NCBI GenBank assembly: GCA_976226885.1
Contig: OZ320322.1
Location: forward strand, 30,380,001-30,444,000
Direction: 5' to 3'
DNA: 64,000 bases
Source: Iphione sp. A-MEVVRFRX5
Lineage: Eukaryota
Below are positions 31,575 through 51,680 of the stretch, in pieces. The position numbers and the translations under genes were made by a program. The notes under the pieces were generated by a model. That model made no database searches and was not told where the DNA came from. It saw nothing but the letters and a program-made list of their open reading frames with translations. Position 1 is the stretch's first letter. Every line of letters starts with the position of its first letter.

Positions 31575-32964
31575 TCAGTCCACGTCCGTCTTCTGAGATC
31601 GGGGTTCTTGTGTCGGCGGTGTGGCCGACGATGAGGCAGCGGGAGAGTTGGGGTCCGGGGAGAGGATGCAGGCGAGACTCGGCGGCTTGTGGTCGGCGGC
31701 CAGCACGGACAGTAGACCCGCCTGCCGCCGTCGCTTCATGCGGATGTTTGCCAGGTGCTTGATCAGTGACGGCGACATGCCGCCCGCCGCCGGCTGCTGC
31801 CCCGACGTCGCGTCACCCCTTCCTCCGTCGACAGCAGCCCCTGCCGCTGCGGACTCCCGACTCATCTCCGGAAGAGCGGAGAAGGAGATGGGCGACAAGT
31901 AGTAGTTGGACGACAAGGTGGAGGTGGTGAGCGTGGAGGGGCGGGAGGCGGCGGCGCAGGCGACGGCGGCAGAAGTGGTGGTCCCGCCGCCGGCCGACGA
32001 TAGCGGGCCCGGTGCCAGGGTCGGGGAGGCGGCCGCGGAGGTGGACAATGTTGCTAGACCGTCCAGACTCTTCGTCGTGCCTAACCCCAGGGTACTGGAG
32101 GTGGTGCTGGAGGAGGTGGTGCTGGTGGTGGTGGCCGCCATCCTGGCCGCCCGGACTCGGGTGAGCACACCTCGCGAGCGGCTCGCCCCTGGCGGCGGCA
32201 GCTCCCCTAGGTAGGACGGTCGCGTCGTCTTGCCCGCCTTCCCGCCGGAAGCTCCACTGGCCGGGGTCGAGGTGGCCGGAGAAAGGCCATCCGTCGGAGT
32301 CGGGGAAGCGCGGCGACCGGCGGCCATAGCGTCTTGCCGCGTGGCCAGGCCACGCCGCTCGTTGACCGGAAGGATGGTGTTCAAGCCGGCGCCCAGGATG
32401 TTGACTGCCGCCGCCGTCGACGATGCCATCTTGTCGAGCTGTTGGTTCAGCACCTGGTCGACGATGTCATACGTGTCGGGCCGCAGCAGCGGCATGGCGG
32501 TGTCACTGATGCCCTCGAAGGGCGGGATGTTGGTGGGCAGGCCAGGGAGGCTGGTGGCCGGGGAGCCGGCCGCGGGGTGCGAGGCGCTCAACCCGCCGGC
32601 CGCGGAGGGCGTGGTGGCCGCGCATGTGTAGATAACTTCCGTGTGCGAGCGGTTCGAGTCACTCAGCGTCTCTGTGACGATGCTGTTGAACCGCTGCGGC
32701 GTGTGCCGGACGCGCGTCGGACGCTGGGCCCCGAGCAACAGCGTCCCGTTGACCTTCACCTTCGGCGGCGTGGACTGTTGCTTGTGCTGCTGGTCGCCTT
32801 TGCAAGCCGCCAGACTAGATGGCGATGACTGGGCGAGGATGCCCCGCTCGTGTAACAGCTGCGCCAGACCCATGTTCATACTGAACGTGGAAGTGCAGTT
32901 GGCCGCGTTCCTGCTAGGGGGCGCCTCGGTGGCACAGACTGATGGACGCGGGGCGCCGCCATAC
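31575..32964 (-). CDS. TRAK1: TRAK terminal exon (canonical long C-terminus)
   Basis: tctttag| acceptor, phase 2; VYGGAPRP...[18 protein letters not shown]...[11 protein letters not shown] at 31575-31577; part of ORF 31575..33017. Confidence 0.92.
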
Positions 32965-35900
32965 CTAAAGAATAGAGTGAAGGGACTGCTTACTGCCTGT
33001 TGATACGCACACATCAACTAATCTAGCTTGCAACAAAAAGTAAAGAGCGCTGAGTGTCCGTGTGATAGTTAGTGAACAAAAATAGTTAACGAGGTTCCAC
33101 AATGCAAAAGGGGACAAATTATGTGGCAGCACACAAAATTCAGGTTCCCTTGAAAGATTTATTGCTATCCTACTTTTAAACGTTTAAAACAAAATAAGTA
33201 GGAAATGGTAGAACATACATGTTAGACTAAAGTCATGTCACAAGGTAGTGTGACGTCACAGCTCGGGTAACGGCCCCAGAGCGTTTATTGCCCGTAACCA
33301 ACAGAGCGCCCGTCGACCTCCACAGAAAGGACAACTATACAACAACAATGATGAGAAGGCAGGCGCTCACTACATCTCAACACATCTAAATCAACCGAAG
33401 TTTGATTTCTACAAGCAACATAAGCACCACAAAAGCCAGGCTCTAAAGTAAAATAATTAAAAAAAACAACGTATGAGCTCAATAACAGCTAGTCAGAATT
33501 AGCCTTGTGATGAGTGAATGATGCAGTCGCCTGGTCAGATCTAGTAGGTATATTAAGATAAGTCTAGTTTATGTTTATTATATTCATTATGTTTTGGAAA
33601 TTATCAGTTAATTATACGTGACAAATGCATACTTGCCATTATCGTATCATTGAGCATATCTGCTAAAATGAAAAACTTTGAAATCATACTTGATGTAGAG
33701 ATTACTCTAATTATACTTAACACTCAAAGCTCTAACAAAACTATCGAAAATAGTTGAAATTATAACTATTTACTATGTACAATTTTCGAGATTCAATTAA
33801 ATAACTAACTGAAGCAATATCCTTATTGACCTGGCAGAATTACGCAAGGTTAAACTAAAAATACATTAATGTAATTGTGAGATAATGTGTGTGTGCATTA
33901 ACTAGGAATGATAAAGAAATAAGGCTAGAGAGGCGCAGAAGGTGAGGGTAGGAGAAGGGTGGGGGAGGGACAGACGGGATGGAGAGGCATGTATCTCTCT
34001 CCCATAAAACAAGATAGTCAAATGAGAAGTTTATTGACATCATCCAGTTAAACAGGAACCGAGTGGAGGAAGGGTGGGGAACTGATAAGTAGGGCGTACG
34101 ATCGCATGAAAGGGACGCCCGGGGTTGAAGGAGGTTGATTGGGGGGAATGGCAGGGCTCTAAGGTAACAAAGAACACATATTTCTACAAAAAAAAGTCAA
34201 TAAGAAGCGCATCAAGACGCTTTAAAATGATTATGATGGAATAATAACTTAACAGCTGACAAGTTTTACCACAACACCCGAGGGAATAGCTAGTTCATAT
34301 AACAACCGTGCCTAAAGACAACAGTGAACAAATGCAAGCTTGGTGCTGGAGTATGTGCTTGGTACAGTTCACAAAGCCAGGCGTACGTAAGAGTCAGGCG
34401 TCCAAATAGGAAACACTCACATCTTGGTCTTAGCTGTACAGCAAGGAAACTACAGGTAACGCGGGTTTTAATGTATACTTTAAGAGGGCTGTAAACCGGG
34501 CCTACAGGTTCAACTCGGTGGGCAACTTAGCCCAAAACGGGTCCTAATTCTTTCAAAAAGGCTAGACAATTCTAACTAAGCAGCTTAGGCGCCTACATGG
34601 TGACCCCACGAAGTCTACCCTGGCCATTACTTTCATCCGGACGGACGGTAGGAGCAGAGTCACATAGCTTTAACTTAACAGTCTGCTCAATCCAACTACG
34701 CGGCGACTTCAACCAACTAGCAGCCTAAGCAGGGTAGGCTATTCGGTTTAGTCTAGTAGACAAATCTGGCTAACCGTTGAATTAGGAGGGTAACTTTGAC
34801 AAAGCTGAGCAGTTCGCCAAGTCCAACTGATGCAGTTGACTTTATGGGACCAGCTTTGATCTGGGAAGCCCGGGAAGTCTGGCAAGGCTGCTAAACTGTA
34901 CAATTAGATCTACAAAACTGGCTTGAGACCTATCCGGTAAAAGATAAGTGATCTGATCGATACTCTTACCTATGGCAAAATACACTAACTGGGCAATCTG
35001 GAAAGTTTAACTAGGTATTTCACCTAATGCAACTACGTTGCCTAGTTAGTCCAACCTGAACTAGGTCTGGTGAGCTAAGAAATGTCACATTGCATGTCAG
35101 AACTTAAAAATAAAGGGTGCTGCTAACTTGCCGTAAAATGAACAGATTGACCAGGCTGGGCAGTATATATATCCAGGTACTCTCAGCCCAATAAGGCTGC
35201 TCACTTAGTTCAACCTGAACTAGCTCTAGTGGACTAAGCAGATCTACCCAATAAATGAACTGATGAATCAGCTACTACCTCCTACCGCATGGCTAGTCTG
35301 GGCAGTATATCTGGGCATCCATCACAGTCCAACTCAGCTGTCCCATCAGTCCTACTAGAGCTGGGTGTATTAAGATGGCCTATTCTTATCAGGTGGGGAG
35401 GACGGACTGCTGAGAATACTGCTACGACTGACAACAAGCATGCACTGGACCACCCAGACCAGTAAGTCGAACAAGACCTGTGTGTCACAAGCTGGTGAAT
35501 CTCATTGCTAGGGGAACAGAATGACATGGGCTGCCAAGTCGGGCCAACAGGAGTTCCGTATCACTAGGTGGAAGTACTGACAGCAGAGGCTAACTATTGT
35601 TAAATCGTAAGCATGTATTGGACTGCCCAGTCGGTAACACCGCAGTATCAGGAGCTGGCTGAGTCTCAGGTGAAAGGACCGGCTGCTGAGGGTACGGCTG
35701 CCTATTCACTTCAGCATGACCTAAGGTCTCATGAGCTAGCTGAGTTTCATTAGTTGAAAGGGTTGTCCGCTCAGACGTGCTGTTTCTACCAACTAAAGCG
35801 TGCATGGGGCTATCTACTTACACGGAGGACAGGTTGGTGCCGTCGTACTGGTCGGTCGGGTGCATGATCTTGGCCGTGGTGTAGGTGTAGGTCGACTGGC

Positions 35901-38900
35901 TCCACACGTCGGACTTGCCAGGATTAACATAGTCAGCTTCACCTGGATGAAACACACGCAAACAAGATGCTTATAACATACTCTTCTACTTGAAATAAAA
36001 TGAACCTGTTCAACAGTTCCTGGAAACCCTAGCAAGAACACATCTTCTCATGGCTACGTGAAAAGTTAATAACAGGCACTTAACATTGTACGCTTTAACT
36101 CTTTGCTTCGCAAGTAGTCGCTGAAACATTCTATAAACACTTCTAAGAATTCTAGGGGAAAAGTGCCTTAAAAATACCTTAATTTAACATGTCGTTTACT
36201 CAAAAGATCAATCCAGCGGAATAAATTCACAGTAAGATGGTCCCGTTCACACAAGAAAAAAACTTGCCGTGAAAATGATACGTCAACACACTGTGAACAG
36301 TTACAAACAAGAGCTTACAAAAACGACACATTTCAATTGTTTTCACGACCATCAAAACACAGGAGAACGTTCTTGGTCGATGAAAGCTAAGATCAGGGTC
36401 CATATTATGACGACGTAGCAGCGTAGATCACCTCTGGATATAAGAGTAGGCAACTACGTTTTATGATCACATAAAGAATGCCTGGCCATATCTGATCGAT
36501 GTTGGAGCCTAAAGCTACATAATGGCAAAACCACTGTTTTTTTAAGTGCTAGCCTGAGGGGACTATACTTAGTAAGGAGCCCTGCGTATGATACTATGAA
36601 GTTTAATACTATTACACAGTACGCGGACTCATGTTCTATACTATCTGCTGGTATTGCAGGCCTGGAAGTCGTAATCTAAGTGACTGAATTCCTTTATCAC
36701 GCCAGGCCTGAACAGATGTGCTGGCAGATGTATATTATAAGCTGGGATAAGTACTAATTCTAAGTCTGAATAAGTATAATCCCTAAGACTCCAAAGATCA
36801 CCAAGTGACTCAGTGTATCTGGCATCTGAGACTCGAGCCATACAATCCGATCGAGTGATGTACAAATACAATTTACCTCGTAATCAAAGAGGTTGGAATC
36901 GACACTGATCCCGAACAGAGCATGAATAAACACCATATATACAACTGACCTTCCTTTACAGAAGAGGCCGCTGTCCAGTAGTGACGTGCTAATATGATAA
37001 TCTGCAAGTCGTTCCCTACTCAGTGTCTGATAGAGTAACTCCCTCCCGGTGGGTGACTCCCGACTCAGTGAAGTATCCAGAAGTGAATACTACACCCTGG
37101 AGGGAGACTGGCCACTGCCCCATCCGGCGGGGACCGGCACCACTGCTACGGAGGAGGGGAATAGCCTGATCCTTACCTACAGCGGGGTATTCCCCGGCCG
37201 GCCCATCGGTTTGGCACTAGATTTGCAACCGACTCCTATCTATATATCTATGTATGCGTCGAGAACACTCAAAATTTGTTTTAATAATTATAAGTCTGAA
37301 GAACGCCCGTCAGAGGGTCGAAAGCTCGCGATCAAGTTGTGAAAATATTACTCAATAAATGCCACAAAGCTGTTGAAAATCAGTGTCAGTCATCTTTTCT
37401 CATAGATTTCTAATAATTATAAGGTTGGTCGCCAAAACGATGAATTATCTTTATGGGAAGGATAGGACGTCTGTTTGATCGGACTGGTGTAGAGATCGTT
37501 CTCTATTCTTAACTCGACCTTCTACTTTTTTCAACGTTAATTACAGGCACCCGCACATGCATCCGCAGATGTATTGTGACACTCCCTTATACATGTATAG
37601 GTATGCGAGGTAGGTTACGATAACCCAAAAGGGAAAAACACGTCCTCTTCAAGCTAAAGGAGCTCCTGAGAACAAGGAATGCAGTTGTGTTGAGAACGCT
37701 GGCGAGCAGACGCTGTAGCACCTGCGGGTCTGCGGGATATTCACTTCAAACATAGTGTAAAACGGACGCGTTGGCACAATCGTAACGAAGTCATTGAGCG
37801 TTGACCTCAAACTGATCCAAAAAGCGAGACTTTATTGTGACTAACGATAGACAGATCCTTCAGCCAGACATTTATCTGCCCACACATCTTCTCAGTGAAA
37901 ATAATACGTGTACATCTACTACCCTGGCACGAGTCATTAGGCACTTTTTACATGTACGCAGATGAAAAAACCCGGCCCCGTATGCGGACGCGGAGAAGCC
38001 CCCTGTAGTGTCCTCACTTAAATTGGATATATATGTTTACCAGATGTATTCTCACCATTGGTTCCTATGGAAATCCACATCCGGATGTGGACAAAACCCA
38101 TTCGGATGGTTTGACATCCACGTCTGCATGATGTAAACGTGAATGGGAACACTGGTGGTAGAGGGCTGGAAAAATATCCGCACTATGTATGGATTCAGAA
38201 CGGAAAAATCCGCTTACATGTGAACACCGCCTTAGTCCGGTTGTCTTTATCTTCAATACAAAGGCCTGGGTAGTTACATGGAGAAAACTCTTGCAAACAC
38301 ACGGCTTTCATTCTCATGTAGTTACAGGCTGGATCATTTAACAACTAGGTACATGTATATGCGAGGAAGATGTTTGTTTTTATGATTAATCGGGAGCCCA
38401 AGGTCGTTACATAAAGTGAACTCTTGCAAACACAAGACTTTCACCCTCATGTAGTTACAGGCTGGATCATTTACATGTACATTGTACTAGTAGTATGGCA
38501 GTATCTCTATCCCACTGTTTCAGCCTAACACAGCATGTGCAGCCGGCCTTGGTCCTCACTGCTAGGTACACCAGGTGTTATTAGATTTGTGAAATGGTTA
38601 GATCGATCAGCCTGAATGTACCCACATATATATATAATATATATATAACAGATGAACAGACAGGTAGATTTGATATAGCTATGTCTCTAACGTGTAAGCA
38701 CTATCCGTGTCCTCCACAGCCTTTAGTCAGATAAGGTTTGGTATAAGCAGGTCGAGGGGGGCAGTTTCGCCGATGACACAGCTCCTTGTTCTACCAAATT
38801 ACTGGCCTCATCTTCCAGTATAGCAATTAGCCAGCTCAGGGGCTATCACCATCGAGTGCAACCTTCCCATGCGGGGCCACACCCCAAAGGGCATGGATTG

Positions 38901-41900
38901 TGGGAAGCCTCACAGTGCGAGAATTTATCTCACAGGACGGCAAGCCCTCATAGGATACAGGTCCTTCGTAAGTTGTGCTTTTGTATCATTCAGGGTCTCC
39001 TGGGAAGATGGCCGTCAATGTTTGAAGGAAGGTGACTGAAAAATCACGTTTACCCAATGAGATCGACCCTTTTGATCCTGTGCCTGCCCTCGAGGTGATG
39101 ATATAAAACTAGCCTTATTGGTCTTCCCACTGATGTATAAATCTCCCAGAAAAATACTTGGTTCTCTATCTGAAGATGGGAATAAACTATATTTCAAGCA
39201 GGATTAAAAGTGAGATTGTGTTTCTCTTCGAGAACCAGGTTTAAAACCTTCCTCCAATGGGAGGAGGGGGGTATGGGCGGGTGGGAGTGTGAAGGGTCAG
39301 TCTTCTGTAGTAGTGGTAGAACCTCCTCCTCCTCCGGTGTCTCTCCAGAGCTTCTCCAGTCACCCACGTGTTATAGAGATCTGCATTAGTGTGGTCTAGG
39401 TTTAGATCTGCCCACTCAGCTGTCGCCACCAGGCGACGAGCAACCTCAGAGGGAGGGCCAGCCTAAATACACGCGGTCCTGTGCATGGTCTACGTGCTCA
39501 TGTGCACGTCCTACACACACAGCGTCCCAGCGTCGTCCAAACGGCGAGGGTGGAGTTTCGTTTAGAAACTAATTCACCACGGAGAACTCGGTCTGGGAAT
39601 GTGGAGGTGCAATTTGAAAAACAGGTCAGGCATTTAATCATTTCGCATGCCTCTTCTAGTATAAATGAGGTTCTTCTTTGTCATTACCATCATGGCAGTG
39701 GGTTTTTTTTCGGTTTGGACTATGTTTTGAAGTTTGGCTTGTTTGTTTGCTCCTGTGTTTCTACCGAGGCATATTACCTCCTAGCGAAGGCGCGGTCGGC
39801 CCAGTGTGTATAAACAAGGCACCAGGTGCCCCTGCCCAGGCTCGCGAAGGGATCCAGCCCGAGTGGCAAAGTAAACATCGCAAGTCCACCTGAATCAGGT
39901 GTTCAGGGAAGCGGGACGGCGGGCCAGGAAGAGCGGAGGAGGAGATCCTACTGGTGGCCGGCGCCTCGGATTGAGCATGGATGGCCTTTCGACGGGCCTC
40001 CCGCCCTCCTGCCCACCACCGATCAACATCTGCAAATCACAGGACGTCCCTGAGACTCACGCCCGTCGCTTTTAAGACTGACCACCCAAGGAGGGCTACC
40101 ACCCTCCCCCACACATGATCCTAAGCCTTCCAGATCCTGCCATCCCCCCCCGCCCCCTCCTTCGGTCCCACATTCCTCCAAGTCTCACTCCGCCCGATTC
40201 CCGCTGCCCCCACCCACAAGGCACAAGGCCTTTTACTCCCCCCAATCTCCTCCCGCCTCCCCCCGGTCGCCTGGAGGACCTTCAAGCCGCCACACCTGCA
40301 CCTGTCCCTCCTTGGGCGGTGATCAGATATCAAGGCGCCTACCTGAAGGACGTCAGGTACGCCAGTCAGGTGAGTGGTCGCCAGGCGCCAAGCAGGGAAC
40401 AAGGTTCCGACGAGGGGACCCACAAAAAGGGTGATTCCCAGAAGAAAACTGAGAGCAGGCGCCGGGCAGGCGCGGAGCAGGACAGGCGTTGGAGCAGGGG
40501 GGGGGGGGACTGCATGCGGCAAAAGAAAAAGGAACAGGGGGAGGGGAGGGCATTCAGGAAGAGGGAATCAAGGAATAGGGAGGGAGGGGCGAGAGGGAGG
40601 GAGGGAGACAAGGAGGGAGGCTGAGAGGTGTACATGAACCCAACTTTGGAACAGCATGTGTTATTGTTAGGGAGTGGAATGGATAGAAGCCAACGCCGTA
40701 AGTCCCATGCTTGGCTTTCAAAAAAAGGGCGCCTTCGGTTGAAATAAATTAAGGGAATTACGGTAATGGAAACGCGGCGAGGGAGGAGAGGAACCCTGCT
40801 CCAATTATGCCACTGACTCAAGCGACTCTCTTAAGGAGTGTTATCTTCTATAAGTACATTTTATCAGATTTAAAGAGCCTTTTACATTCAAAAAAATATT
40901 ATCTTAACCAAAACAGCAGTTTCAAATTTCCTCTAATTTTTTCAACCAAAACGTGGTGACATTTCCAGATAGCTAGGCATAATTGTAAATTTTCTTTTTG
41001 ACATTGCGGGAGCGTTAAAATTTTGACTGGATGACCGATTCTTCTACGACAGAAACAAAGGAAACAATATGAACATTATCATGTTTAACACATTGTCTTT
41101 ATTCACAACGCTATGAATATTTACATCAGGTTATAGAGGCCTTGTGCGCAGGCGTCAGCGGCATGGTGAGTCACGAGAGCGCCAGCGTGTTGCCATGACA
41201 ACATGCGGTCTCACATCATGTTCAAACCGGCCGAGGCGGCACACAATACAGGTTTCCGGTGTTCTAGAGTTGATGTTACGTCTGAGATTAATACTAATAG
41301 TGAGAGTCATTCGAATATTAGTAACCTGGAGGAAACGGGACAATTAAATACCCTATCAGGTGATATAATCTAGGGTCTACTACGTTACCTTCTATCAATA
41401 AACGGAATGTCCTGCCTATGATACATCTATAAACAAAACGGTGTAAACCTATGAGATCTTGTCTACTTCTGGTACAACTAATATTGTCAAAAATACAGTG
41501 CATAAATTGTACTCGTAATACCGACAAGGTTATAAATGGCTGATAGCGCATAAGTACATGTACATCCTCATTCTTTCGCAGCACAAATGGTAAGATTCCA
41601 CAGATCGTAAGGCAGCCTTGTCTCAACATAAGATACATTAGGAAACAAATAAACACATCTGCCAATGCTTTAACCTACTGTATTTTCATAGATCGTATTG
41701 TTTTGGAACAGAGAAATACCTCTGTCCTGTCAACTTCTCTGAGAAGAAATGCAAGATGGTATAAGAAAAGACCCAATCTGTACGAGATAAAAACAACCCA
41801 TTATCGTGAGCAACATTAGAGATCAGCAACTGTCATTACATGTACTCGTATCGACTATGTATAGCACTGTGCGTTTTAAGATGTCAGCAAGTAAACTACA

Positions 41901-44900
41901 GTCGTACATAAATTATATTAAAATTATCTGAAAGCCAAATAATCAAGGCAAAAAGAGATCAACCAAATGAGGACAACGTACACGCACAATTAATAGAATA
42001 AATCATCAAATTTCTAACGAAATGAACTAAATACAGGTAGTTCACTTTAAAATCTAAACACCCATTGGTCAAAGATCATCATGGAAAAGTCACTGTCGTC
42101 CGATCTATTACAGCCAGATGCATTCATCGAGATATTTTCGTGCGTATTTCTGGGCTAAAGTTTTAATGTACACATACTAGCATGTCTTCACATTCAACTT
42201 ATGACAAAAAAGCATGAAAAACAAGGCAAGGTTGGTTGAAATAATTGATGCGTGTAATATAAATTAACCGTCGAATATGATTTAAATGCTGCAAAACTGA
42301 GCAAAAAATAAAATTACAATGTTTCCACATTCTATTCACACAAACAGATGTGTACTCGAATATCACAACTCGTCGGTGTTCTGTTTGACACCAGAGGGCA
42401 GCAACGCCAGCTATAAGGTTAGCACCATGGACGGATTCAGTTTAAATGTGATTTCTAGAGACTGTAGAGCCTTGACTAGGATACTTGGGTACAGTTAGAG
42501 CGAAGGGTAGGTAACTAAGATCTAGTACGTTGTCATGTCATGCAGTCTGCAACATTTTCTTTGGGTAATGAGGTAAGCTCGCCAGAAACACTCTGAGAAA
42601 CTGCGCGCGATAGACAAGAGACAGACATAGAGACAGACATCAGAGACAGAGAGACAGTGACTGACGGACAGACAAAGAGGGAGAGACGGTAAGAAAACGG
42701 ACACTACGAGACCAAGAGACAAGCTGTCATACACACATACACACACAAACACACACACACACACGTGCACACAAGCGTACACACAGTGGTTACGCAAATC
42801 GTCACTGTAATACACATGTTCCCTTCTGTGGCTCGAGAGACATACGCAATCCCCTTCCTCTCAGTCGGCTAGCCCTTCTGTCACTCAGTGTCCTGCCAGG
42901 TTCAACACGCCCAGACCCTTGGTCGTCTTCTGCTTTGCTAAGTTCTCTGTCACTCCTCGAGTGAGGAGTGGTGGTTTTATCTTGTTCATCTAAGTCATGG
43001 ATAGTTGTGCTGTGGCAGGCATTGGTGGAGCCGCTGCTATCTGGGCCGCTTCCCACCATACCTGAGGTGTTTTTCATTCCATTGCCTGTACTGATATCGT
43101 GAGAATTTGGCAGCTCTGTTTGGGAGAGGCTACGCTCGGTAACAACGTCGACGACCTCTGAGCGGGTGCAAGTTTCTGTCATGGAGTTAGGACCGGGATC
43201 TGTTCTCTGTTCACTCTTTGTAACGCTCTTTGTTTTCTCCCTGACGTTGCGAACCTTCCTCGGTCGGAGACTAGCCGCTAGTCCGGCCAAGCCCCCAAGA
43301 CCTGGCGGCGCTTGAGATAACAGGGATGGCGCCTGGATGGGCTCTGGATGCCCCATCTCCACGTCACCACCCGTGCCACTGCCAGTGCCACAGCCGGCCG
43401 GGCCTTGACTCTTGAGATCGTTACAGGCCTTGTTCCTATGGCCAGGTTTATGACCAGTTCCTTGGATCCAACTACCAGGCCAGATGCTACTAGCTGAGTT
43501 CTTACCATCTGTACTGCGATGACCAAGCGCTTTTCCTGAGATGTTGTGGCTACTGCCACTGACGCTGGCCCTGCTGCCAGGATCGGAACTAGTTTCCAGG
43601 CTTGCTGCACCGTTTGCATCAGTGCCATCATTAGGCCTTCTGCATCCACTGCTGCTGCTGCTGTTGGGCCGACTGCCAATTCTAGACTCAGTCCGGCCAG
43701 CGGAGCGCCTTCTATCAGGATTACCACCACCACCATCACCACCACTGACAGCTGTGCCCCAGCTGCTGGGACCACAGCTGCAAGTGGTGGTGGCCCTGGC
43801 GACGGGCTCGCTGGCAGTGGCCGGGTCCACACTGCTAGACTCAGTACCAGCAACGTACGGGCCCTGGCTGTCAGATCCTCTGGTGTGACCCCCATGACTG
43901 GACGTGCCCGCAGAGGCCGCACCACCCTTGAGGTTGGTAACACAGGTGTTGCTACCATCATCTTCGATGACCTGGTCCGCACAGGCCTGCCTGAGGTCAC
44001 AGACAGAGCACTGGTTAGACACCGAGCCGATGGTGTCCGAATCGGTGTCGGCGGCCCAGTAGCTTGCCTCCGAGCGTGGCTGTAAAGAGGAGGAAGAGGA
44101 GGAGGAAGAGGAGGAGCATATGTCATGCTCTAGGCACATACCATCTTCTTCATAGTCGGACAAGGTGTAGACTTCCTGGTCGACCTCGATCGGCTTCTCA
44201 CCCTTGATCTGGATGCCCGGCCGGGGATCAAGGAAGCCACCCAGGTGAGGGGTGGCCAGCCGCTGCCAGTGATGTAAAGTCATAGAGCCTGTAACAACAA
44301 CAACAAGGAAGGGCGGTCAAATTATGTTGAAAACTAACTATATGGTAACTATCAACAATTAATCTTCATTTCAGCTGTCAAACAATGACCAGATATATAC
44401 TCCATCCCAAACACTGGCAGTGCTTAGATTCAGCTTACCAAGTGCATCAATAACTCAGTTTAATCAAAGCCGTATGCTTAAAGGTTGACATAGACAATTT
44501 ATGAAATGCACTTCGCCCACATTACACTACGCATACATTTCACTTTGTCCTTGGGGACAAGTAAAGAAACACCGTAAGGTCACTATGTAAATCAATGATG
44601 CAAACATGACATGAATTCTGTTGAAGAAGGAGCCTGTATGAGCTGGTCTAACTGCATGCTTTCCTTCCTCTGACATCCATGTAAAGTTTATAGGCGCAAA
44701 TAATATGCATGTACATGTACTTTATGAGATGGCCAACTTATAGGCTCTCCCTTTCTCTGGCATCTACGTAATATCCATATAAAAGCACCAACACTTTAAG
44801 AGACGATCATACTTCAGGCTCTCGCTCTCTATTAAGGCTCTACAGGCACAACTCTTTTAACGAACCCTCTGTGAACCAAGCCTCTTTATAGCAAAGTCAC

Positions 44901-47900
44901 AGTTCATTCTATAAGAAGTAGTAATTTCAGATCAAATGTGACGGTCCCTATCCTTATATATTATGCTTCTGTTAACAAAGGTTCTGACGACAAAGTGATC
45001 TCTTTGAACGCATGTATCATAAAAAAAAGTCTTTGAACATATGCATTTACTTAACAGAGGTATACCTGTACTAATTTCTACTGTAGCAACTCTATTCCTA
45101 GCGGGCGTCGCTAGCTCTACAATGACAGCAGGCCTACCTTCCATGGGTTTGACAATCTGGAGCTTCTCCGGGATGCGGAAACCGTAGCCCGAGATTCCCG
45201 AGAAGCGTGACAGGTCAGAGAAGTTGCTGCCGCTGCCCATTGACATCAAACTATCAGGCGTCTGGTATCCCGTCGGCGTCGACGACCCGCCGCTACGACA
45301 TGACGAAAGACAAGAGGATAGGCAAGATGAAACAACACACTGGTGACAGATGATACGAGATGAAACAGAATACAACTGACAGAAGAAGTGGGATGAAACG
45401 AAATAAAACTAATAGAGGACACGAAATACGTATAGGATAAAACTAACACACTACATGACAGAATTCAACTTGGTACAGCTTTCACATCAGCAGTTTCTAA
45501 ATTAGAAACAGAAATGGATACTATACAGAATGAGATACTACCAAAAATACACAGCGTATACATTCTGATCCAATACCTCAACCGTCAGCTTATTTAATAG
45601 ACTACAAGCGCCTTCGGCGCCTGGAGACACACACTCATGATCCCCTTCCTACCCTGACAGGTCAAAGTCCAGACTGTCATGCATGGACACACAAACACAC
45701 GCTGGGTTTGACCAGGTGTAGTGATACTCTCTCTCTCTGGTTTCCCCCTTGTCCAAAGTAGCACAATGTTTTAATTCATTTTCTTTTTTTTGTATTTTGC
45801 AACAGAAAACATATGTCACCCTCTATGATTTGAAAAAATATAACACAAACATATGAAAGCAGGCAAATAATCAGTGTAGGAAAGAGTGTCACAGGCATGA
45901 GAGCTCCTCTCCATGGCCATACTACTTTCAGGCAACGTTTTATATAGGTAGTGTAATGAGGTGTTCAATTATGCATTTTCATTTATTTACCTCTTTTTCT
46001 TATCGTCTACGTCGCGAAGAATGCTTTCATTGATCTCATTTGCCTTTCGCAGAGTTAGACGTCTCAATGCTGTTTCAAGGTCATTGGAGCCGGGAATGCC
46101 AGGACGACCCAAGGTCGTTGCAGAGCTGAAGGAACAATCGACAAATATATTCATTGCAGTCGTATACAATAGCAACGAAGTATTAATGGATAAATAAAAT
46201 CTAAATTGATCTGCATTGGTCTGATATCAATACTGACCTAGTGGAATCTAAGGACACCTAATGAATTTTACTTTTGGGGGGGAATATTTCGCTACATGAC
46301 TGTATTTTTACATTCAGTTTACAATGTATTTTTACATTCAGTTTACATTTTCTCAGCGAAAGGATTATGTGTTTTGTTTAACAGATGCGCGGGAATGAAC
46401 ATCTATAAAAGTAAATGGACAATGTATAATAATGACATGAACGCTATGAAGAATAAAGCAGAATGGTTGATTTCTTCTTTATTTTCCCCCTTAATTGTGC
46501 ATGGAATGTTTACCACTAGTACAGCGTCCGCTCGCCTTCAGTCATTAATTTTCACTGCTCGCCTTCAACCATTAGTTTACACTGCTCGCCTTCCACCATT
46601 AGCTTTCACTGCTCGCCTTCCACCATAAGTTGTCACTACTCACCCATAGTTGGAGTCAACGTCGCCGCTGTAGCCGTCATTGAAGGACTCACTCTCGGAC
46701 AGGTAGAGGGAGCTGCGGTTGGAGGAGCCGGCTATCGACTCGCAAGTCTCGTTGCCAGAGGTGCTGTGGCTGGAGCCGGGGATGGACATGAGGCTGGACG
46801 ACTTTCTGTTGTTGTGCCTCTTCACAGTCTTCGCCGTCTCCATCACCCGCTTGTTGTGGGACCTTTCAAAGTACAAGGACGCACTACTCTGTATTCCTAG
46901 TGCAGAAAATGCACAGCAGATTGGGTATCTTCCATTCGGAACAGGAGTCCCGCATGTAAGAGGTCTCCATCCAACGAGTAATTATCACCGTAGCAACTTG
47001 TTTTTTTTACTGGCAAATACCCACAGTTATACATGTAATACACTTCGATTCCCTCTCAGAAATAATCCAACACATTTCTGAATTGAAAACAGCAAATAGG
47101 AATGGTCATTCAGGGGGAGACGGGCCTACTGTGGTGAGACGGTCAACCAAATTGACTCAGTACCCTATCCCTTTTTCAGACATAAAGGTATTTTGGTGTC
47201 GTGGCAGACAGACAAAATGGCGGTGAGTAAGCTTATTTGGAGACCAAAGATACGCATTCTTGATGGGGTTAGTCCCTGGAATGTAAAGAATGTTCCTTAT
47301 CTATTAAGCAAGGTGAGGCTTATCACCCTCCACCAAACAAATTTCACTCTTCAGAGAACAGGGGATTAAGGGTTCCTTAACTTTAAGCCTTCCAGGTACT
47401 CACTCGTGTCACAGCATATTCACTGTATCCGTAGATTCCTTATCCGGGCTGCTCCCGATCAGTCCGGATAAGGTTTTGATTGTATCTACACTTTATGATA
47501 TAATTATCAATCAAAAACCAGAGGTCAGATATCCACGACATTCATGATCTGGCTTTATTGTTTCCTTTGTACAGGTATAGCTCTACGTTTCGGGTTCTTA
47601 GAAAACCTTCTTGAGGACCCCCCTGTTATATCTACATTTGTTCAGGTTATTTCTTGAAATCAGAGTCCAAGCTTCAGCGGATGCTGCTGTAGTGTGTTAG
47701 GACATTTTTCTTCAACGCTTACGGATCTAGAATGTCACAATGAGAAGTAGGCTGTAGATAAGTACAGCTTTTACCACACTTAGTGATTCACTATCTACCG
47801 TAGAGAAGTTTTGTACAATGCACACTTATGGAATAATGCCCAAGTTTGACCGTAATGAAGAGTGGACCAGCAGGGCATTGGTGTTGAAGAGATTATTATA

Positions 47901-50900
47901 AGGTTAGAATAAGCTCTTCGTTAGACATAAACTAAAAAGAACAGACACCAAGGCACCTGTGCAAACATGGCATGAGCGGCTGCTGCACAACCCCACCGTA
48001 CGATACAACAGACTGGGCAAGGCGAGCGTAAAGTATGTACGATTATTATTACCTGACAGTAGATCTGAATGGCAAACATACGTCAAGATCAGTTCTCGTG
48101 TAATCAAAGTCATACTTAATATCTCGGGCATTCCGATGTGTGAGAGATGGCAAAGAGATTGATAGCAGTCCAACAAGGTAACTTGACTAAGTTATGTAAT
48201 AGCAGCGGTGATGATCTCACGACGACTCTTTTCATACTTTCACTTCAAGAGACCGCCACCCCGAGTAACTTCAACACTTAAGGTGTGACGGGTAACTCCT
48301 TCAATTAAGGCAAGCGGCCAGCCACCACACGAAGCATAACAATTCAATTCAACCAATATGTACATGGCTTTCTTTTCGGTAATATCAACATAGTTACAAC
48401 CGTAAAACAGCCCGGGGTTACAATAAACTTACCGGCGGTCGGCGGGCGAGTAGCCCTCAGGATAGTCCATATCCTTCTTGATCGAGTCCTCAAGCTCGAA
48501 GGCCAGCGATCCTTCAGGCAAGAAGGGCATATAGTGGCCGTACTGCTGGCGTACAGCATTGGGTCCATGCTTGCTGCGCAATGCCTTGAGTTGCTCCTGT
48601 GCCTCGGCGTGAAGCGCGAGCAGCTCATGGTACTTGTCATGCTGCTCACTAATCTGTAGGCAGCGATGAGAATATTCATGTTTAAGGAATGTTGTAAATA
48701 CACGCGTCCTTTCAAACGTGTGTGTGATAGGCAGCGGTATTGTACAACTCTAAAACCACACTGACCCGTAAAACTTCACTATATGTACTTCTCTTTCTGA
48801 ATCCTCTGATTTTCCCGTCGACATTTGTCTGGGTTTTTTTTTTGTCTTTTTTTGTTTGTTTTTTGTTTTTTGTTTTTTTTTGGGGGGGGGTACATTTTCC
48901 ACAAGAATAAATAGGGCATGGCTTTAATCCTTGTCACTTGTACAAAAATCGATCCCCATATTTAAATAAAACTATTCACAGTGTTCTAATACTATACCTC
49001 AGTTGTAAGCTCTCTCTGCGACTCTTGAGCTGCTGTTAGGTGACTCGTCAGCTCAGCGTTTTCTACGGTTAACTGTGTGGAACGAAAATAAAACAAGGCT
49101 CGTCAAAATCAGACAAAAGATTACTATGTGATCCTATAAACACAGGTCTGGGACTAAACGCTGACTACCTCGACACAGTCACATATGGTAATATCGATGC
49201 TGCCAAGCATGACAGAATTATATCTGACTTTAAAACTGGAAGATTTTGTTAAACTTATCGGAGTTCCTTTTCAACTGTGTAAGCTACTACTTTGATCAAA
49301 TAAAGATTTATTCAAAAATAAATATCATGGCTGGAAGATGTTTCCCCGGCAATAACTTTTGTGCAGAAAACTGCAAGGTCATCAATTCGACGGACTGGTA
49401 TGTATGTATTTAACATCGTTCCCGCCGAACAGGAAAGGTGACTGCAGTGTACTAAACCTATCAGGATTTATATCATTTCGGGACCACACCCTAGACGTGT
49501 GTGTGTGTGTGGAAGGGGACCAGTTCCCCCCTCGTTTACCTTCTTGATGGTGGCCTCGAGGTTGACGACCTTGTTGAGCAGCGCCGTGATCTCGTCGTGC
49601 TGTCGCAGGGTGAGCTCGGCCTTGGTGAAGAGCTCGTCCTGCAGGGCCTGGATGCGGCCGTTGACGTCGGCCAGCTGGCGGACGGCGTCCTTCACCAGCC
49701 GCTCCTCCTTCTCCTCCAGGTCGCATGTCTCCACCTTGAGCTGCGCCGTCTCGCAGCGCAGCGTCAGGTTCTCCTCCTCCAGACCGCGCACCTTCTTCTG
49801 CAGGTTGTCGACGTGGCCGAGTCCCAGTAGCGCCTTGCTGGAAGTCAGCAGAGGACAAGCGAGTAGCGACAGGAACCGAGAGGACAAGAACGGAGATTGT
49901 TACCTGCTCAGAAACTGAACAATCTTGCACACTTATGTGACCAGATAGACAAACGAGATCGAAACAGGAACAGACACAAATCAAGACATAGATCCTGCCA
50001 TACTTAGAGTTTCTGTCCAAACAATCTGTTTCTCTACTATGTAATTACAACCCTACTGGCGATCTAAGCAAATTGCATTTGAAGACTCACGTTGGCGACT
50101 CTCCCGGGGTTTCCGAGTCATAGTCCTGGATGTACGCTTGTAATAAGGCATCTTTCATAGAAACCTCATGACGCAGTTGTGCAACCTACAAGACGGAAAA
50201 ATGGTAAAGTCCAACTTAGATCCCGCAGGGTTTTCTTCAATGGTTTAGCATCTACAACGTTGTGAACCTTATGAACCCTTTTAAGCATAGATATATATGC
50301 GTTCATGTATACATGTGCATGTACATCCAAATCTGAGCCGCTGCTGAAAGTATCACTCAGTGACCGTATTATATTTGCACCATCATGTTTCTTCACCTCA
50401 ATTTATGTGCAAACACTCAAATTAAACTTTCAACAAACTTCTCTTTATACAACAGATGACAACCCTCGTGTGCTACCCCCGGACATTAGTTCTGCCCGGC
50501 CCCATTTCTCTGAACAAGAAACTGGTACTCACACAGTCGTTCGCGTGGGCGAGTTGCTCCTCTAATTGCTCATTTTTCTCCTCTAATTCTTTGTTCTTGT
50601 CGAGGAGGTTCTGTCCGATACGAGCTGCTAGTTCAAGATCGCGTTCTTTCTGTTGAAATCGTAAAAAAACGGGGAATGTTGACTGATGACAGAATCGAAA
50701 AATAGAAATATGTAACTATTACTTCAGGACCATCTTCTTCCTGTTAAAACTAAAGTAAACATCTACGAAATTGGAGACCCACAAAACCCTGTACGGTTAT
50801 GTTCTCTGTTACGTACTGAACTCTCATCATAGGAGTGGGCCAGACTTAAAAGCACATCAGATTTACAGGTAATTGGTGTTTCAAATGTTAAAGCTTTGAA

Positions 50901-51226
50901 AGACCATTAAAGAATAAATTCACACTCACAATAACATCACTTTCATTGACAAAAACCATCCTAAACAAAAGTGGTTAGTTCCTTTTAACTTCTATATGGA
51001 CATATACGTGTATGTACAGGGAACGTTTTCCTTGTTCTGATGTTGCTTCTCTAGTTTACATAAAAGCACAGTTTAGCTGAAAACGGACTCCATTCCCCGT
51101 CTAATCGGTAGTTTTAAAGAAAAGAGCCTTTTCCGTGTCTGTTACTGACCTCTTCCAATAGACGTGTCACAGCCTCAATATCATTGTACGTTTTAGTCAT
51201 CTGGCCCACGCGTTCCGCACATAGGA
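31575..51226 (-). CDS. TRAK1: Trafficking kinesin-binding protein (TRAK1/TRAK2/milton family), spliced, 5'-partial
   Basis: Exons 51150-51226, 50533-50649, 50091-50185, 49540-49837, 48998-49072, 48433-48653, 46644-46862, 45991-46125, 45138-45292, 44142-44288, 35822-35942 and 31575-32964 are all AG/GT bounded and phase-compatible (3050 nt + 1). Hallmarks: [82 protein letters not shown] and [11 protein letters not shown]. Probably a single invertebrate co-orthologue of TRAK1/TRAK2/HAP1 (inference). Confidence 0.95.
34421..34433 (-). CDS. TRAK1: Candidate 13-nt TRAK microexon
   Basis: Minus strand reads tttccttgctgtacag|ctaagaccaagat|gtgagt, with strong splice signals on both sides; no transcript evidence. 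Confidence 0.4.
35822..35942 (-). CDS. TRAK1: TRAK exon (PGK...TYTYT...HP block)
   Basis: catccag| acceptor and gt|gtaagt donor; [41 protein letters not shown] resembles the TRAK HPGK..STFTFTT..ILHP block. Confidence 0.9.
38283..38480. repeat. Diverged ~60-bp direct repeat (period ~134)
   Basis: aactcttgcaaacac..ctttca..ctcatgtagttacaggctggatcattta occurs twice. Confidence 0.85.
41167..41202. promoter_or_regulatory. AP-1 site plus RFX X-box-like palindrome
   Basis: TGAGTCA at 41167-41173 and GTTGCCATGACAAC at 41189-41202 in a locally GC-rich patch. Confidence 0.3.
42387..42403 (+). promoter_or_regulatory. CTCF-like motif in TRAK intron
   Basis: GACACCAGAGGGCAGCA is a close match to the CTCF core; motif match only. 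Confidence 0.35.
42802..44141 (-). CDS. TRAK1: Candidate alternative TRAK terminal extension (donor read-through), 446 aa ending in CaaX
   Basis: Frame stays open 1340 nt past the g|gtatgt donor at 44142 (ORF 42802..44283); ends ...[25 protein letters not shown]-stop. Confidence 0.6.
44142..44288 (-). CDS. TRAK1: TRAK exon (milton domain end)
   Basis: gttacag| acceptor; [49 protein letters not shown]; phase-1 donor gatg|gtatgt. Confidence 0.93.
45138..45292 (-). CDS. TRAK1: TRAK exon
   Basis: gtcgtag| acceptor and gaag|gtaggc donor; [20 protein letters not shown]...[13 protein letters not shown]. Confidence 0.95.
45991..46125 (-). CDS. TRAK1: TRAK exon
   Basis: ccttcag| acceptor and ag|gtaaat donor; [45 protein letters not shown]. 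Confidence 0.95.
46528..46643. repeat. 27-bp minisatellite abutting a TRAK splice donor
   Basis: ctcgccttc at 46531, 46558, 46585 and 46612 (period 27). Confidence 0.92.
46644..46862 (-). CDS. TRAK1: TRAK exon
   Basis: ttgaaag| acceptor and gg|gtgagt donor; [31 protein letters not shown]...VDSNY. Confidence 0.92.
47640..48320 (-). mobile_element. Highly decayed LINE (CR1/L2-like) ORF2 3' remnant
   Basis: Broken frames give [21 protein letters not shown] and [15 protein letters not shown], resembling post-RT LINE motifs; many stops. Confidence 0.45.
48433..48653 (-). CDS. TRAK1: TRAK exon
   Basis: cctacag| acceptor and cg|gtaagt donor; [28 protein letters not shown]...[26 protein letters not shown]. 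Confidence 0.95.
48998..49072 (-). CDS. TRAK1: TRAK exon (HAP1_N)
   Basis: cacacag| acceptor and gag|gtatag donor; [25 protein letters not shown]; 75 nt. Confidence 0.95.
49540..49837 (-). CDS. TRAK1: TRAK exon (HAP1_N coiled coil)
   Basis: cttccag| acceptor and aag|gtaaac donor; [34 protein letters not shown]...[10 protein letters not shown]. Confidence 0.95.
50091..50185 (-). CDS. TRAK1: TRAK exon (HAP1_N)
   Basis: cttgtag| acceptor and ac|gtgagt donor; [31 protein letters not shown]. Confidence 0.95.
50533..50649 (-). CDS. TRAK1: TRAK exon (HAP1_N)
   Basis: tcaacag| acceptor and tgt|gtgagt donor; [39 protein letters not shown]. Confidence 0.97.
51150..51226 (-). CDS. TRAK1: TRAK exon (HAP1_N start); most 5' securely identified exon
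   Basis: tttccag| acceptor (phase 1) and gag|gtcagt donor; [25 protein letters not shown]. Confidence 0.97.
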
Positions 51227-51680
51227 CTGGAAAAGACAAATCGGGAAATAAAGGCCCAGGAACAATGGCAGCTCAATACAGATCCCCTTCATTGTAACAA
51301 TTACATTATTTGTGTACAAGCATATGGGAACGCCATTAAATGGAGTAAAACATGAAATGAAACTGAGCCAAGGCACTCCGGCTTCCAGTAAAAACAAAGT
51401 CGTTTCGGCATAATGGTCTCACATTTTAGACAGAATAGCTTCAAACCAATTGTAGCCGTATTTAGACTCATACTTGAGTATCTCCCAATTGGGATAAATG
51501 TTGCACTTAATGAACTTTAAAAAACACTTACGACTCAAATTGTCCATTTTCTAGAAGCAGGATTAATACCACGGTTGTACACCTCATGTTACACTGTATT
51601 ACCACATTTAGATTTGCATCATTCCATTTGATATGCAGCCTCTGGATTAATATCATTCCATACGGTACTATTTTCGACAC

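Follow-up and report, generated by a model that had tools for sequence, protein, structure and literature searches.

Can a motor adaptor of the TRAK/Milton family carry its own lipid anchor? This question is raised by a TRAK/Milton gene on the minus strand of a 64,000-nucleotide (nt) stretch of DNA from Iphione sp. A-MEVVRFRX5 (contig OZ320322.1, positions 30,380,001 to 30,444,000; here called the window), in which a conserved exon can be read past its 5' splice site into a long open reading frame (ORF) that ends in the CaaX box CVLQ. Canonical TRAK/Milton proteins are adaptors for kinesin-1 and dynein and are bound to mitochondria through Miro. They form the standard link between mitochondria and motors, Miro is regarded as the membrane receptor, and Miro-independent access to membranes is an open question. 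A first-pass annotation of this DNA had proposed that alternative 3' processing produces a TRAK that anchors itself to membranes by a CaaX box and an adjacent polybasic signal, and it had taken the animal to be a lancelet. In the analysis reported here, the CaaX-ended alternative end proved to be conserved, whereas the polybasic signal and the taxon did not hold. We consider it likely that alternative 3'-end formation gives this gene a short, conserved TRAK/Milton isoform with a farnesyl-type CaaX tail.

A reading frame beyond the donor of a conserved TRAK exon

The ORF occupies positions 42802-44283 of the minus strand and encodes 493 amino acids (aa), as seen both in the open reading frame list and by direct reading. 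It begins in a conserved TRAK exon of 147 nt (44142-44288, minus strand), which follows the acceptor ...ttgttacAG at 44290-44289, encodes ...LSDYEED, and has its last base at 44142. The 5' splice site is G/GTATGT (44136-44142; the slash marks the exon boundary), with the intron GT at 44141-44140, and is read in frame as Gly-Met if it is left unspliced. This donor is good but short of perfect, being suboptimal because of the pyrimidine at +4. Beyond it lies a read-through coding tail of 446 codons (42805-44141, with the G at 44142). The tail ends in the CaaX box CVLQ (42805-42816, read from the sequence), which is followed by a TGA stop at 42804-42802. CVLQ fits the criteria for a CaaX substrate, with a Cys four residues from the end, an aliphatic residue at a2, and an X drawn from M/S/Q/A/C. 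A charge count defines a basic patch of 21 residues directly before the box (42817-42879). Past the stop, the first canonical poly(A) signal on the minus strand is ATTAAA at 42162-42167 (634 nt downstream) and the second is AATAAA at 41098-41103 (1698 nt downstream). The donor, the long open frame, the C-terminal sequence, and the poly(A) hexamers had all been listed in the first-pass annotation, and all are present at the positions just given. Simple repeats of the (GT)n and (GTCT)n type at 42612-42785 (TRF; AC and AGAC on the plus strand) directly follow the CVLQ stop and form the GU-rich start of the presumed 3' untranslated region (UTR).

At a stop probability of 0.038 per codon, calculated from the tail's own base composition, the probability that the tail would be open is 2.7e-8. 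None of 20,000 shuffles of the tail stayed open, and the other two sense frames contain 7 and 40 stops. A chance origin of the open frame is excluded by this probability (P of about 3e-8), and a chance ORF was rejected on this ground together with the recurrence of the frame across lineages and the conservation of its C-terminal 20 residues, both described below. A separate gene or a transposon inside the intron was also rejected as the source of the ORF. The G+C (GC) content of the tail is 56 to 60%, versus about 36 to 40% in the flanking intron, and in this respect the tail resembles the exons of the gene. The first 52 residues of the ORF, which comprise the exon and four residues of the tail, are 85% identical to P0123, the corresponding ORF of contig L002. 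For most tblastn queries, similarity to TRAK homologues ends at the donor or within about 20 nt of it. A word-index search with the ORF returned, among the matches listed, only TRAKs, which matched its first 48 aa.

The tail is rich in Ser (17.5%), Gly (12.8%), and Thr. Pfam found no family in it, and an exhaustive phmmer search over 1.84 billion representatives found no protein that matches it as a whole. Single-sequence prediction with AlphaFold2 gave a mean predicted local distance difference test score (pLDDT) of 37.8 for the tail, without secondary structure or fold. This model is consistent with a disordered linker of free length (72 to 446 aa in the sequences compared) that has a constrained end. 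At the start of the tail, poly-Ser codons, (TCC/TCT)n at 44080-44141, double as a polypyrimidine tract that is followed by ttacAG. A potential mini-intron of 62 nt (44141-44080) is present there, and its removal shifts the frame to a tail of 21 aa.

Recurrence of the CaaX end in other animals

The best phmmer match was P0123, a 201-aa ORF on the 426-kb contig L002, whose TRAK is 79% identical to that of the window over the concatenated exons (502 aligned columns). L002 has the same exon, its donor G/GTACGT is read through, and 153 further open codons lead to the end CIIS. The L002 tail starts with GTCIDLE, versus GMCLEHD in the window, and the two tails are unalignable except for their first few residues and their last 20. 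The last 20 residues of L002, LRGQGLNMTLQEDAQACIIS, align with the last 20 of the window (42805-42864). Nearly all of the residues shared by the two ends are written with different codons, and the synonymous sites are almost all different. The agreement is therefore at the level of the protein.

The same arrangement is present at further loci. The donor heptamer is GGTATGT, read as Gly-Met, in the window, L003, L004, and L008, and it is GGTACGT, read as Gly-Thr, in L001, L002, L005, and L007. L002, L003, L004, and L007 are contigs from ENA assemblies, with names like ctgN_30x_l. The TRAK loci L003, L004, and L007 and the short contig L008 have open tails of 73 to 258 residues after the donor. 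The probability of an open frame, computed for L002 to L004, was 6e-8 in L004 and about 6e-4 in L002 and L003, and the GC content of the tail was above that of its flanks at each locus compared. L001 and L005 are transcript contigs in which the upstream exons are joined into one ORF with the HAP1_N and Milton domains. In both, GGTACGT is kept in frame and the ORF stops at the CaaX box (674 aa and CSIM in L001; 591 aa and CVIM in L005), with 180 to 284 nt of 3' UTR past the stop. L001 and L005 are spliced mRNAs of the CaaX-ended form. The mark of exon extension, a 5' splice site retained in an mRNA from which the upstream introns have been removed, was found in these relatives only.

Among annotated proteins, P0003 of Capitella teleta (CAPTEDRAFT_229053, "HAP1 N-terminal domain-containing protein"; 577 aa) ends in CVIM. 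The transcript contigs P0001 (674 aa) and P0031 (591 aa) end in CSIM and CVIM, respectively, and the P0254 cluster, which includes a 565-aa transcript, ends in CVIA. CVIS terminates the partial spliced ORF P0124, the genomic ORFs P0125 (L003) and the P0198 cluster (L004), and P0126, an ORF on a 1.4-kb contig. The genomic ORF P0193 (L007) ends in CVVM, and the ORF P0248 ends in CKVM. CSIM is also the end of the P0250 cluster, which consists of ORFs on contigs of about 1 kb, and of P0273 (0.6-kb contig). Other contigs carry ORFs that end in CAIM (P0130, 1.3 kb), CLVM (P0145, 3.4 kb), CRLI (P0258 of L008, 1.3 kb), and CLIS (P0272, 1.0 kb). The fragment P0156 reads ...SCVVMWWCSCD, a CVVM box with six residues beyond it, and may reflect a lost stop or a sequencing error.

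A strict CaaX end was present in 18 of the 266 nonredundant TRAK sequences that were fetched, versus 0.16% expected from composition. No vertebrate, mollusc, or canonical isoform in this sample ends in a CaaX box. In about 17 independent lineages, the box is retained while the surrounding sequence drifts. These lineages have I, V, or L at a2 with M, S, Q, or A at X, and CRLI, CINI, and CCQS were seen as three boxes of looser fit. A check proposed with the original idea, a search of relatives for a conserved terminal CaaX box, thus came out in its favor: the same donor, open frame, and farnesyl-type box recur, and read-through of the donor and the CaaX end are conserved across deep lineages. 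On these comparisons, the read-through ORF is supported as a real and conserved alternative to the canonical coding end of TRAK, and so is selection on the CaaX box.

The occurrence of the box differed with the class of donor. When read-through past ..EEDG started with Thr, a CaaX end followed in 7 of 9 sequences, and when it started with Met, in 2 of 4. Consensus GTAAG donors, read as Lys, gave a CaaX end in 0 of 9, with tails of at most 51 residues (Fisher p = 0.008; counts uncorrected for phylogeny). This association, which is a correlation only, suggests that the pyrimidine at +4 is linked with the CaaX tail and that the site may be deliberately weak.

The charge of the tail is not retained in the same manner. 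The net charge of the last 30 residues is +6 in the window, -1 in the nearest relative P0123, and -7 in Capitella; before the box, it is -1 to -2 in P0125 and P0130 and -11 in P0031. Since the basic patch is absent in the nearest relative and reversed in Capitella, it is a feature of the species, outside the conserved design. The polybasic second membrane signal that had been proposed is peculiar to this species, and the patch was rejected as a defining part of the isoform. As judged from the sequences compared, only the CaaX box, and not the patch, is common to the isoform across lineages. The patch contains RRAS (42868-42879), a protein-kinase-A-type site located 18 residues ahead of the CaaX Cys. 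If phosphorylated, this site could, speculatively, weaken electrostatic contact with a membrane, as at Ser181 of K-Ras4B.

Two further observations concern short TRAK ends. The motif (G/S)LAxLA(A/R) is present in 5 of 21 read-through tails, with about 0.006 expected per tail; it lies at 43285-43320 in the window and also in the tails of P0125, P0130, P0001, and P0138. It resembles the canonical motif GLAxLLxERGI (32870 in the window), of which the tail may retain a copy as a linear motif. In vertebrates, a different conserved short C terminus is found at the equivalent position: short TRAK1 isoforms of amphibians and reptiles (658 to 723 aa; P0085, P0086, P0092, P0103, P0112, P0114, P0117, and P0120) share the end ...Y(Q/H)VLLRG(A/E)(I/V)G(Q/H)(T/A/S)L, without a Cys box.

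The host gene, its canonical exons, and its placement

The host gene of the ORF is TRAK/Milton. Pfam identified HAP1_N (PF04849) in the exon at 49471-49887 (E = 1.9e-25) and the Milton/kinesin-associated domain (PF12448) at 45.1 to 45.3 kb, in the ORF at 44935-45375 (E = 2.1e-11). In tblastn searches with TRAK proteins, ten exons were laid out from 51233 to 44142, collinear exon by exon. The upstream exons, which were located by Pfam and tblastn and are common to all isoforms, span 45103-51233 of the minus strand. Their approximate limits, taken from tblastn high-scoring segment pairs, are 51233-51150, 50658-50530, and 50185-50093 for the first three; 49860-49537 (HAP1_N), 49084-48995, and 48656-48432 for the next three; and 46864-46616, 46199-45990, and 45294-45103 (Milton domain) for the last three.

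The canonical downstream exons (31575-35970, minus strand) are reached only when the donor at 44142 is spliced. They include an exon at 35829-35970, which ends near 35830; a 13-nt microexon at 34421-34433; and a large exon from about 32964, which carries the family motif GLAxLLxERGI at 32870 (tblastn match, 32909-32832). The canonical C-terminal region corresponds to a run of about 480 codons without a stop (31575-33017), which is coding from about 32964. Because these later exons are present downstream, the 44142 donor must be used for the canonical protein, and read-through is an alternative to canonical splicing at this site. The exon at 35829-35970 has an in-frame stop right past its end (..SSV-stop). 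This is the "SSV tail" of the first-pass annotation, and it would amount to a one- or two-codon read-through of that exon's donor.

Elsewhere in the long TRAK intron, a GC-rich block at 40000-40820 (63% GC, with a strong negative GC skew) contains several overlapping Pro/Gly/Arg-rich ORFs on both strands, of which one was tested and had no Pfam match. Rfam gave no match over the whole window, and Pfam gave none on the window's other long ORFs.

Branchiostoma TRAK is only 33 to 77% identical to the window per exon, no closer than TRAK from molluscs; one shorter TRAK model from B. lanceolatum reaches 88% in its first 25 residues. In two quick maximum-likelihood trees, the Branchiostoma sequences sit with those of hemichordates, echinoderms, and vertebrates. 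The first tree joins the window to P0001, the Capitella/P0031 pair, and P0162, with a Shimodaira-Hasegawa-like approximate likelihood ratio test (SH-aLRT) value of 91. In the second, a single group (SH-aLRT 83) unites the window with L002, L003, L004, P0124, P0001, and the Capitella/P0031 pair, and the narrower clade of the window, L003, and L002 has a value of 94. All placeable CaaX-ended sequences fall in the Capitella-like clade. The assumption of a lancelet origin was rejected, since the identity to Branchiostoma is too low and the tree places the window with Capitella-like sequences. With moderate confidence, these trees place the window TRAK with annelid-like spiralians. The Branchiostoma TRAK isoforms P0044 and P0051 have an optional segment after EEDDG, G(C/W)AC(L/M)ELD...SVLSLTRSLSFTSFLAENLCVV, which rejoins the next exon. 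The segment begins similarly to GMCLEHD of the window, closes with Cys-Val-Val, and may be what is left of a former CaaX end.

The proposed isoform, its alternatives, and known systems

Human EHBP1 ends in the same box, CVLQ, and is prenylated in vitro, with farnesyl preferred (PMC5026484), which agrees with the earlier statement that a CaaX box with Q at X is a farnesyltransferase substrate. Because CVLQ fits the farnesyltransferase rule and has this precedent, we propose a short farnesyl-ended TRAK. In the proposed mechanism, the suboptimal 5' splice site G/GTATGT at 44142/44141, which is separated from the following coding exon by more than 8 kb, would sometimes be skipped. Cleavage and polyadenylation would then take place inside the intron, with ATTAAA at 42167-42162 and AATAAA at 41103-41098 as candidate signals. 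Translation would continue in frame through 446 codons of a fast-evolving, disordered, Ser/Gly-rich linker and would stop after CVLQ. The product would retain the whole motor-binding part, composed of the HAP1_N coiled coil and the Milton domain, and would lose the canonical C-terminal region. Farnesylation of the CVLQ Cys, removal of -VLQ, and carboxymethylation would provide the adaptor with a lipid handle of its own, which the adjacent basic patch would assist in this species. With the canonical tail gone, the handle would tether kinesin-1 and dynein either to a membrane or to a partner that binds farnesyl. A lipid-anchored form of TRAK is probably real, and the window's isoform could be one arm of a "three-way cargo switch" of TRAK C termini.

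Several points weigh against this proposal. Use of the isoform in this species and lipidation of the TRAK tail are both predictions from sequence. A look-up of sequencing runs listed no RNA run for this genome, and a look-up of the exact product found no identical gene product on record. The GC content at third codon positions (GC3) is 0.55 in the tail, far under the 0.81 of the constitutive exons, and codon usage therefore differs between them. No homologue of the middle of the tail was found in the phmmer search over 1.84 billion representatives. At 446 aa, the tail is about two to six times longer than those of the relatives (72 to 258 aa). The basic patch is not conserved, and a comparable patch is present in none of the CaaX-ended relatives compared. 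Finally, the grouping of the clade rests on quick trees with SH-aLRT values of only 83 to 94.

The strongest alternative accepts that the isoform is farnesylated but takes the farnesyl as a protein-protein handle for a specific receptor, like that of Spindly for the ROD beta-propeller, and not as a means of membrane insertion. Conservation is confined to the CaaX box and, in close relatives, the roughly 20 residues before it, and a second membrane signal, whether a basic patch or a nearby Cys, is nowhere conserved. In Spindly, which belongs with TRAK2 to the CC1-box class of dynein adaptors, the farnesyl acts independently of membranes. However, a strong basic patch (+6) adjoins the box in the window, as in membrane anchors of the K-Ras4B type, and no candidate receptor is known. 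We regard this alternative as unlikely, though it deserves to be taken seriously.

It is considerably less probable that the conserved coding end is real and its Cys box remains unprenylated, serving instead, for example, as a docking motif or as a redox or metal site. Prenylation of the TRAK box is read from sequence only, and very acidic upstream sequence, as in Capitella (-7) and P0031 (-11), can disfavor the farnesyltransferase or membrane binding. Yet the Cys, the aliphatic a2, and an X of M/S/Q/A have been kept in about 17 lineages despite divergence before the Cys. The pattern retained is the farnesyltransferase specificity rule itself, and the identical box of EHBP1 is a substrate.

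Only marginally behind this is the improbable case in which the extension is spliced once more at its far end and so becomes an internal alternative segment, or in which the mini-intron at 44141-44080 is removed, so that the CVLQ end is rarely or never made. Such re-splicing has a parallel in the Branchiostoma isoforms that carry CACLELD...FLAENLCVV between EEDDG and IQPTSG, and the window's polypyrimidine tract and ttacAG ending at 44080 could serve as an acceptor, the use of which shifts the frame into the 21-aa tail. Against it, the frame is open through to the conserved C-terminal motif and the CaaX box, the transcripts of relatives end with the box, and 62 nt is very short for an intron. 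A functionless chance frame in a retained intron, with which the low GC3 of the tail and its middle without homologues would agree, is highly improbable and appears already contradicted by the comparative data, given the P(open) of 3e-8, the recurrence of a read-through ORF with a CaaX end in many lineages, and C-terminal 20 residues conserved despite saturated synonymous sites.

The short farnesyl-ended isoform is the reading that we favor. We are more hesitant about a broader version of it, which we put at somewhat under an even chance. In this version, farnesylated TRAK would be an old regulated feature of the whole spiralian (annelid-like) clade. A deliberately weak GTAYGT donor, set against intronic polyadenylation, would switch between the canonical tail and a self-anchoring lipid tail that carries another membrane or partner. 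The Branchiostoma segment CACLELD...ENLCVV would perhaps be a relic of this end, with an origin towards the bilaterian ancestor. If the isoform is real, kinesin-1 and dynein would have a second, built-in coupling to membranes, switched by the choice between splicing and polyadenylation, and a motor adaptor would join the short list of farnesylated trafficking proteins (Spindly and CENP-E/F). In annelid models (for example, Capitella or Platynereis), farnesyltransferase inhibitors would then serve as a tool for studying how organelles are transported. Should the box prove not to be lipidated, its conservation would still single out a TRAK isoform that has gone unstudied.

The closest counterparts of the window's isoform are those of its relatives. 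Capitella CAPTEDRAFT_229053, P0001, P0031, P0123 to P0126, P0130, P0193, P0198, P0272, and P0273 are of the same isoform type, in which GGTA(C/T)GT is read through past ..EEDG into an unconserved acidic or Ser-rich tail that ends in a farnesyl-type box. They differ in the length of the tail (72 to 258 aa, versus 446 aa in the window), and the window's last 20 residues are found only in P0123. With canonical TRAK1, TRAK2, and Milton, the short form shares the family, the N-terminal two-thirds with HAP1_N and the Milton domain, and the conserved exon; unlike them, it exchanges the C-terminal region for a disordered, CaaX-ended tail. It fails the comparison with farnesyl-plus-polybasic anchors of the K-Ras4B type, which have a conserved Lys/Arg cluster, since the patch is present in the window only. 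EHBP1 has the identical CaaX box but is otherwise unrelated, being an effector of the Rab8 family.

Isoform-specific CaaX ends made by 3' processing are known from lamin A versus lamin C and from the two ends of Cdc42. INF2 likewise has CAAX and non-CAAX isoforms by choice of 3' end, and its CAAX form is anchored to the endoplasmic reticulum (PMC8077471). The TRAK gene is like these in that one gene would yield prenylated and nonprenylated C termini by 3' end choice. It is unlike them in that the predicted prenylated form arises by not splicing (exon extension) and in that the protein is a microtubule-motor adaptor.

Full-text literature searches on CAAX, prenylation, and farnesylation found no prenylated or lipidated TRAK/Milton, and neither TRAK nor Milton appears in a 2026 review of farnesylated proteins. 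The earlier remark that no lipid-anchored TRAK was known agrees with this, as the literature search found no paper describing one. Spindly (SPDL1) is a farnesylated dynein-dynactin activating adaptor (PMC4436830, PMC5379955), and TRAK2, which has a CC1 box, belongs to the same class of dynein adaptors (PMC8319186). The proposed isoform would resemble Spindly as a coiled-coil motor adaptor of the CC1-box/Spindly-motif type whose attachment to cargo depends on a C-terminal farnesyl. Spindly differs in being an unrelated kinetochore protein, in that its farnesyl binds ROD, and in that its CaaX box is constitutive and not isoform specific. Isoform-specific CaaX ends, as in INF2, and a farnesylated motor adaptor, as in Spindly, are already known from other genes; a lipidated, CaaX-ended TRAK would be the new element.

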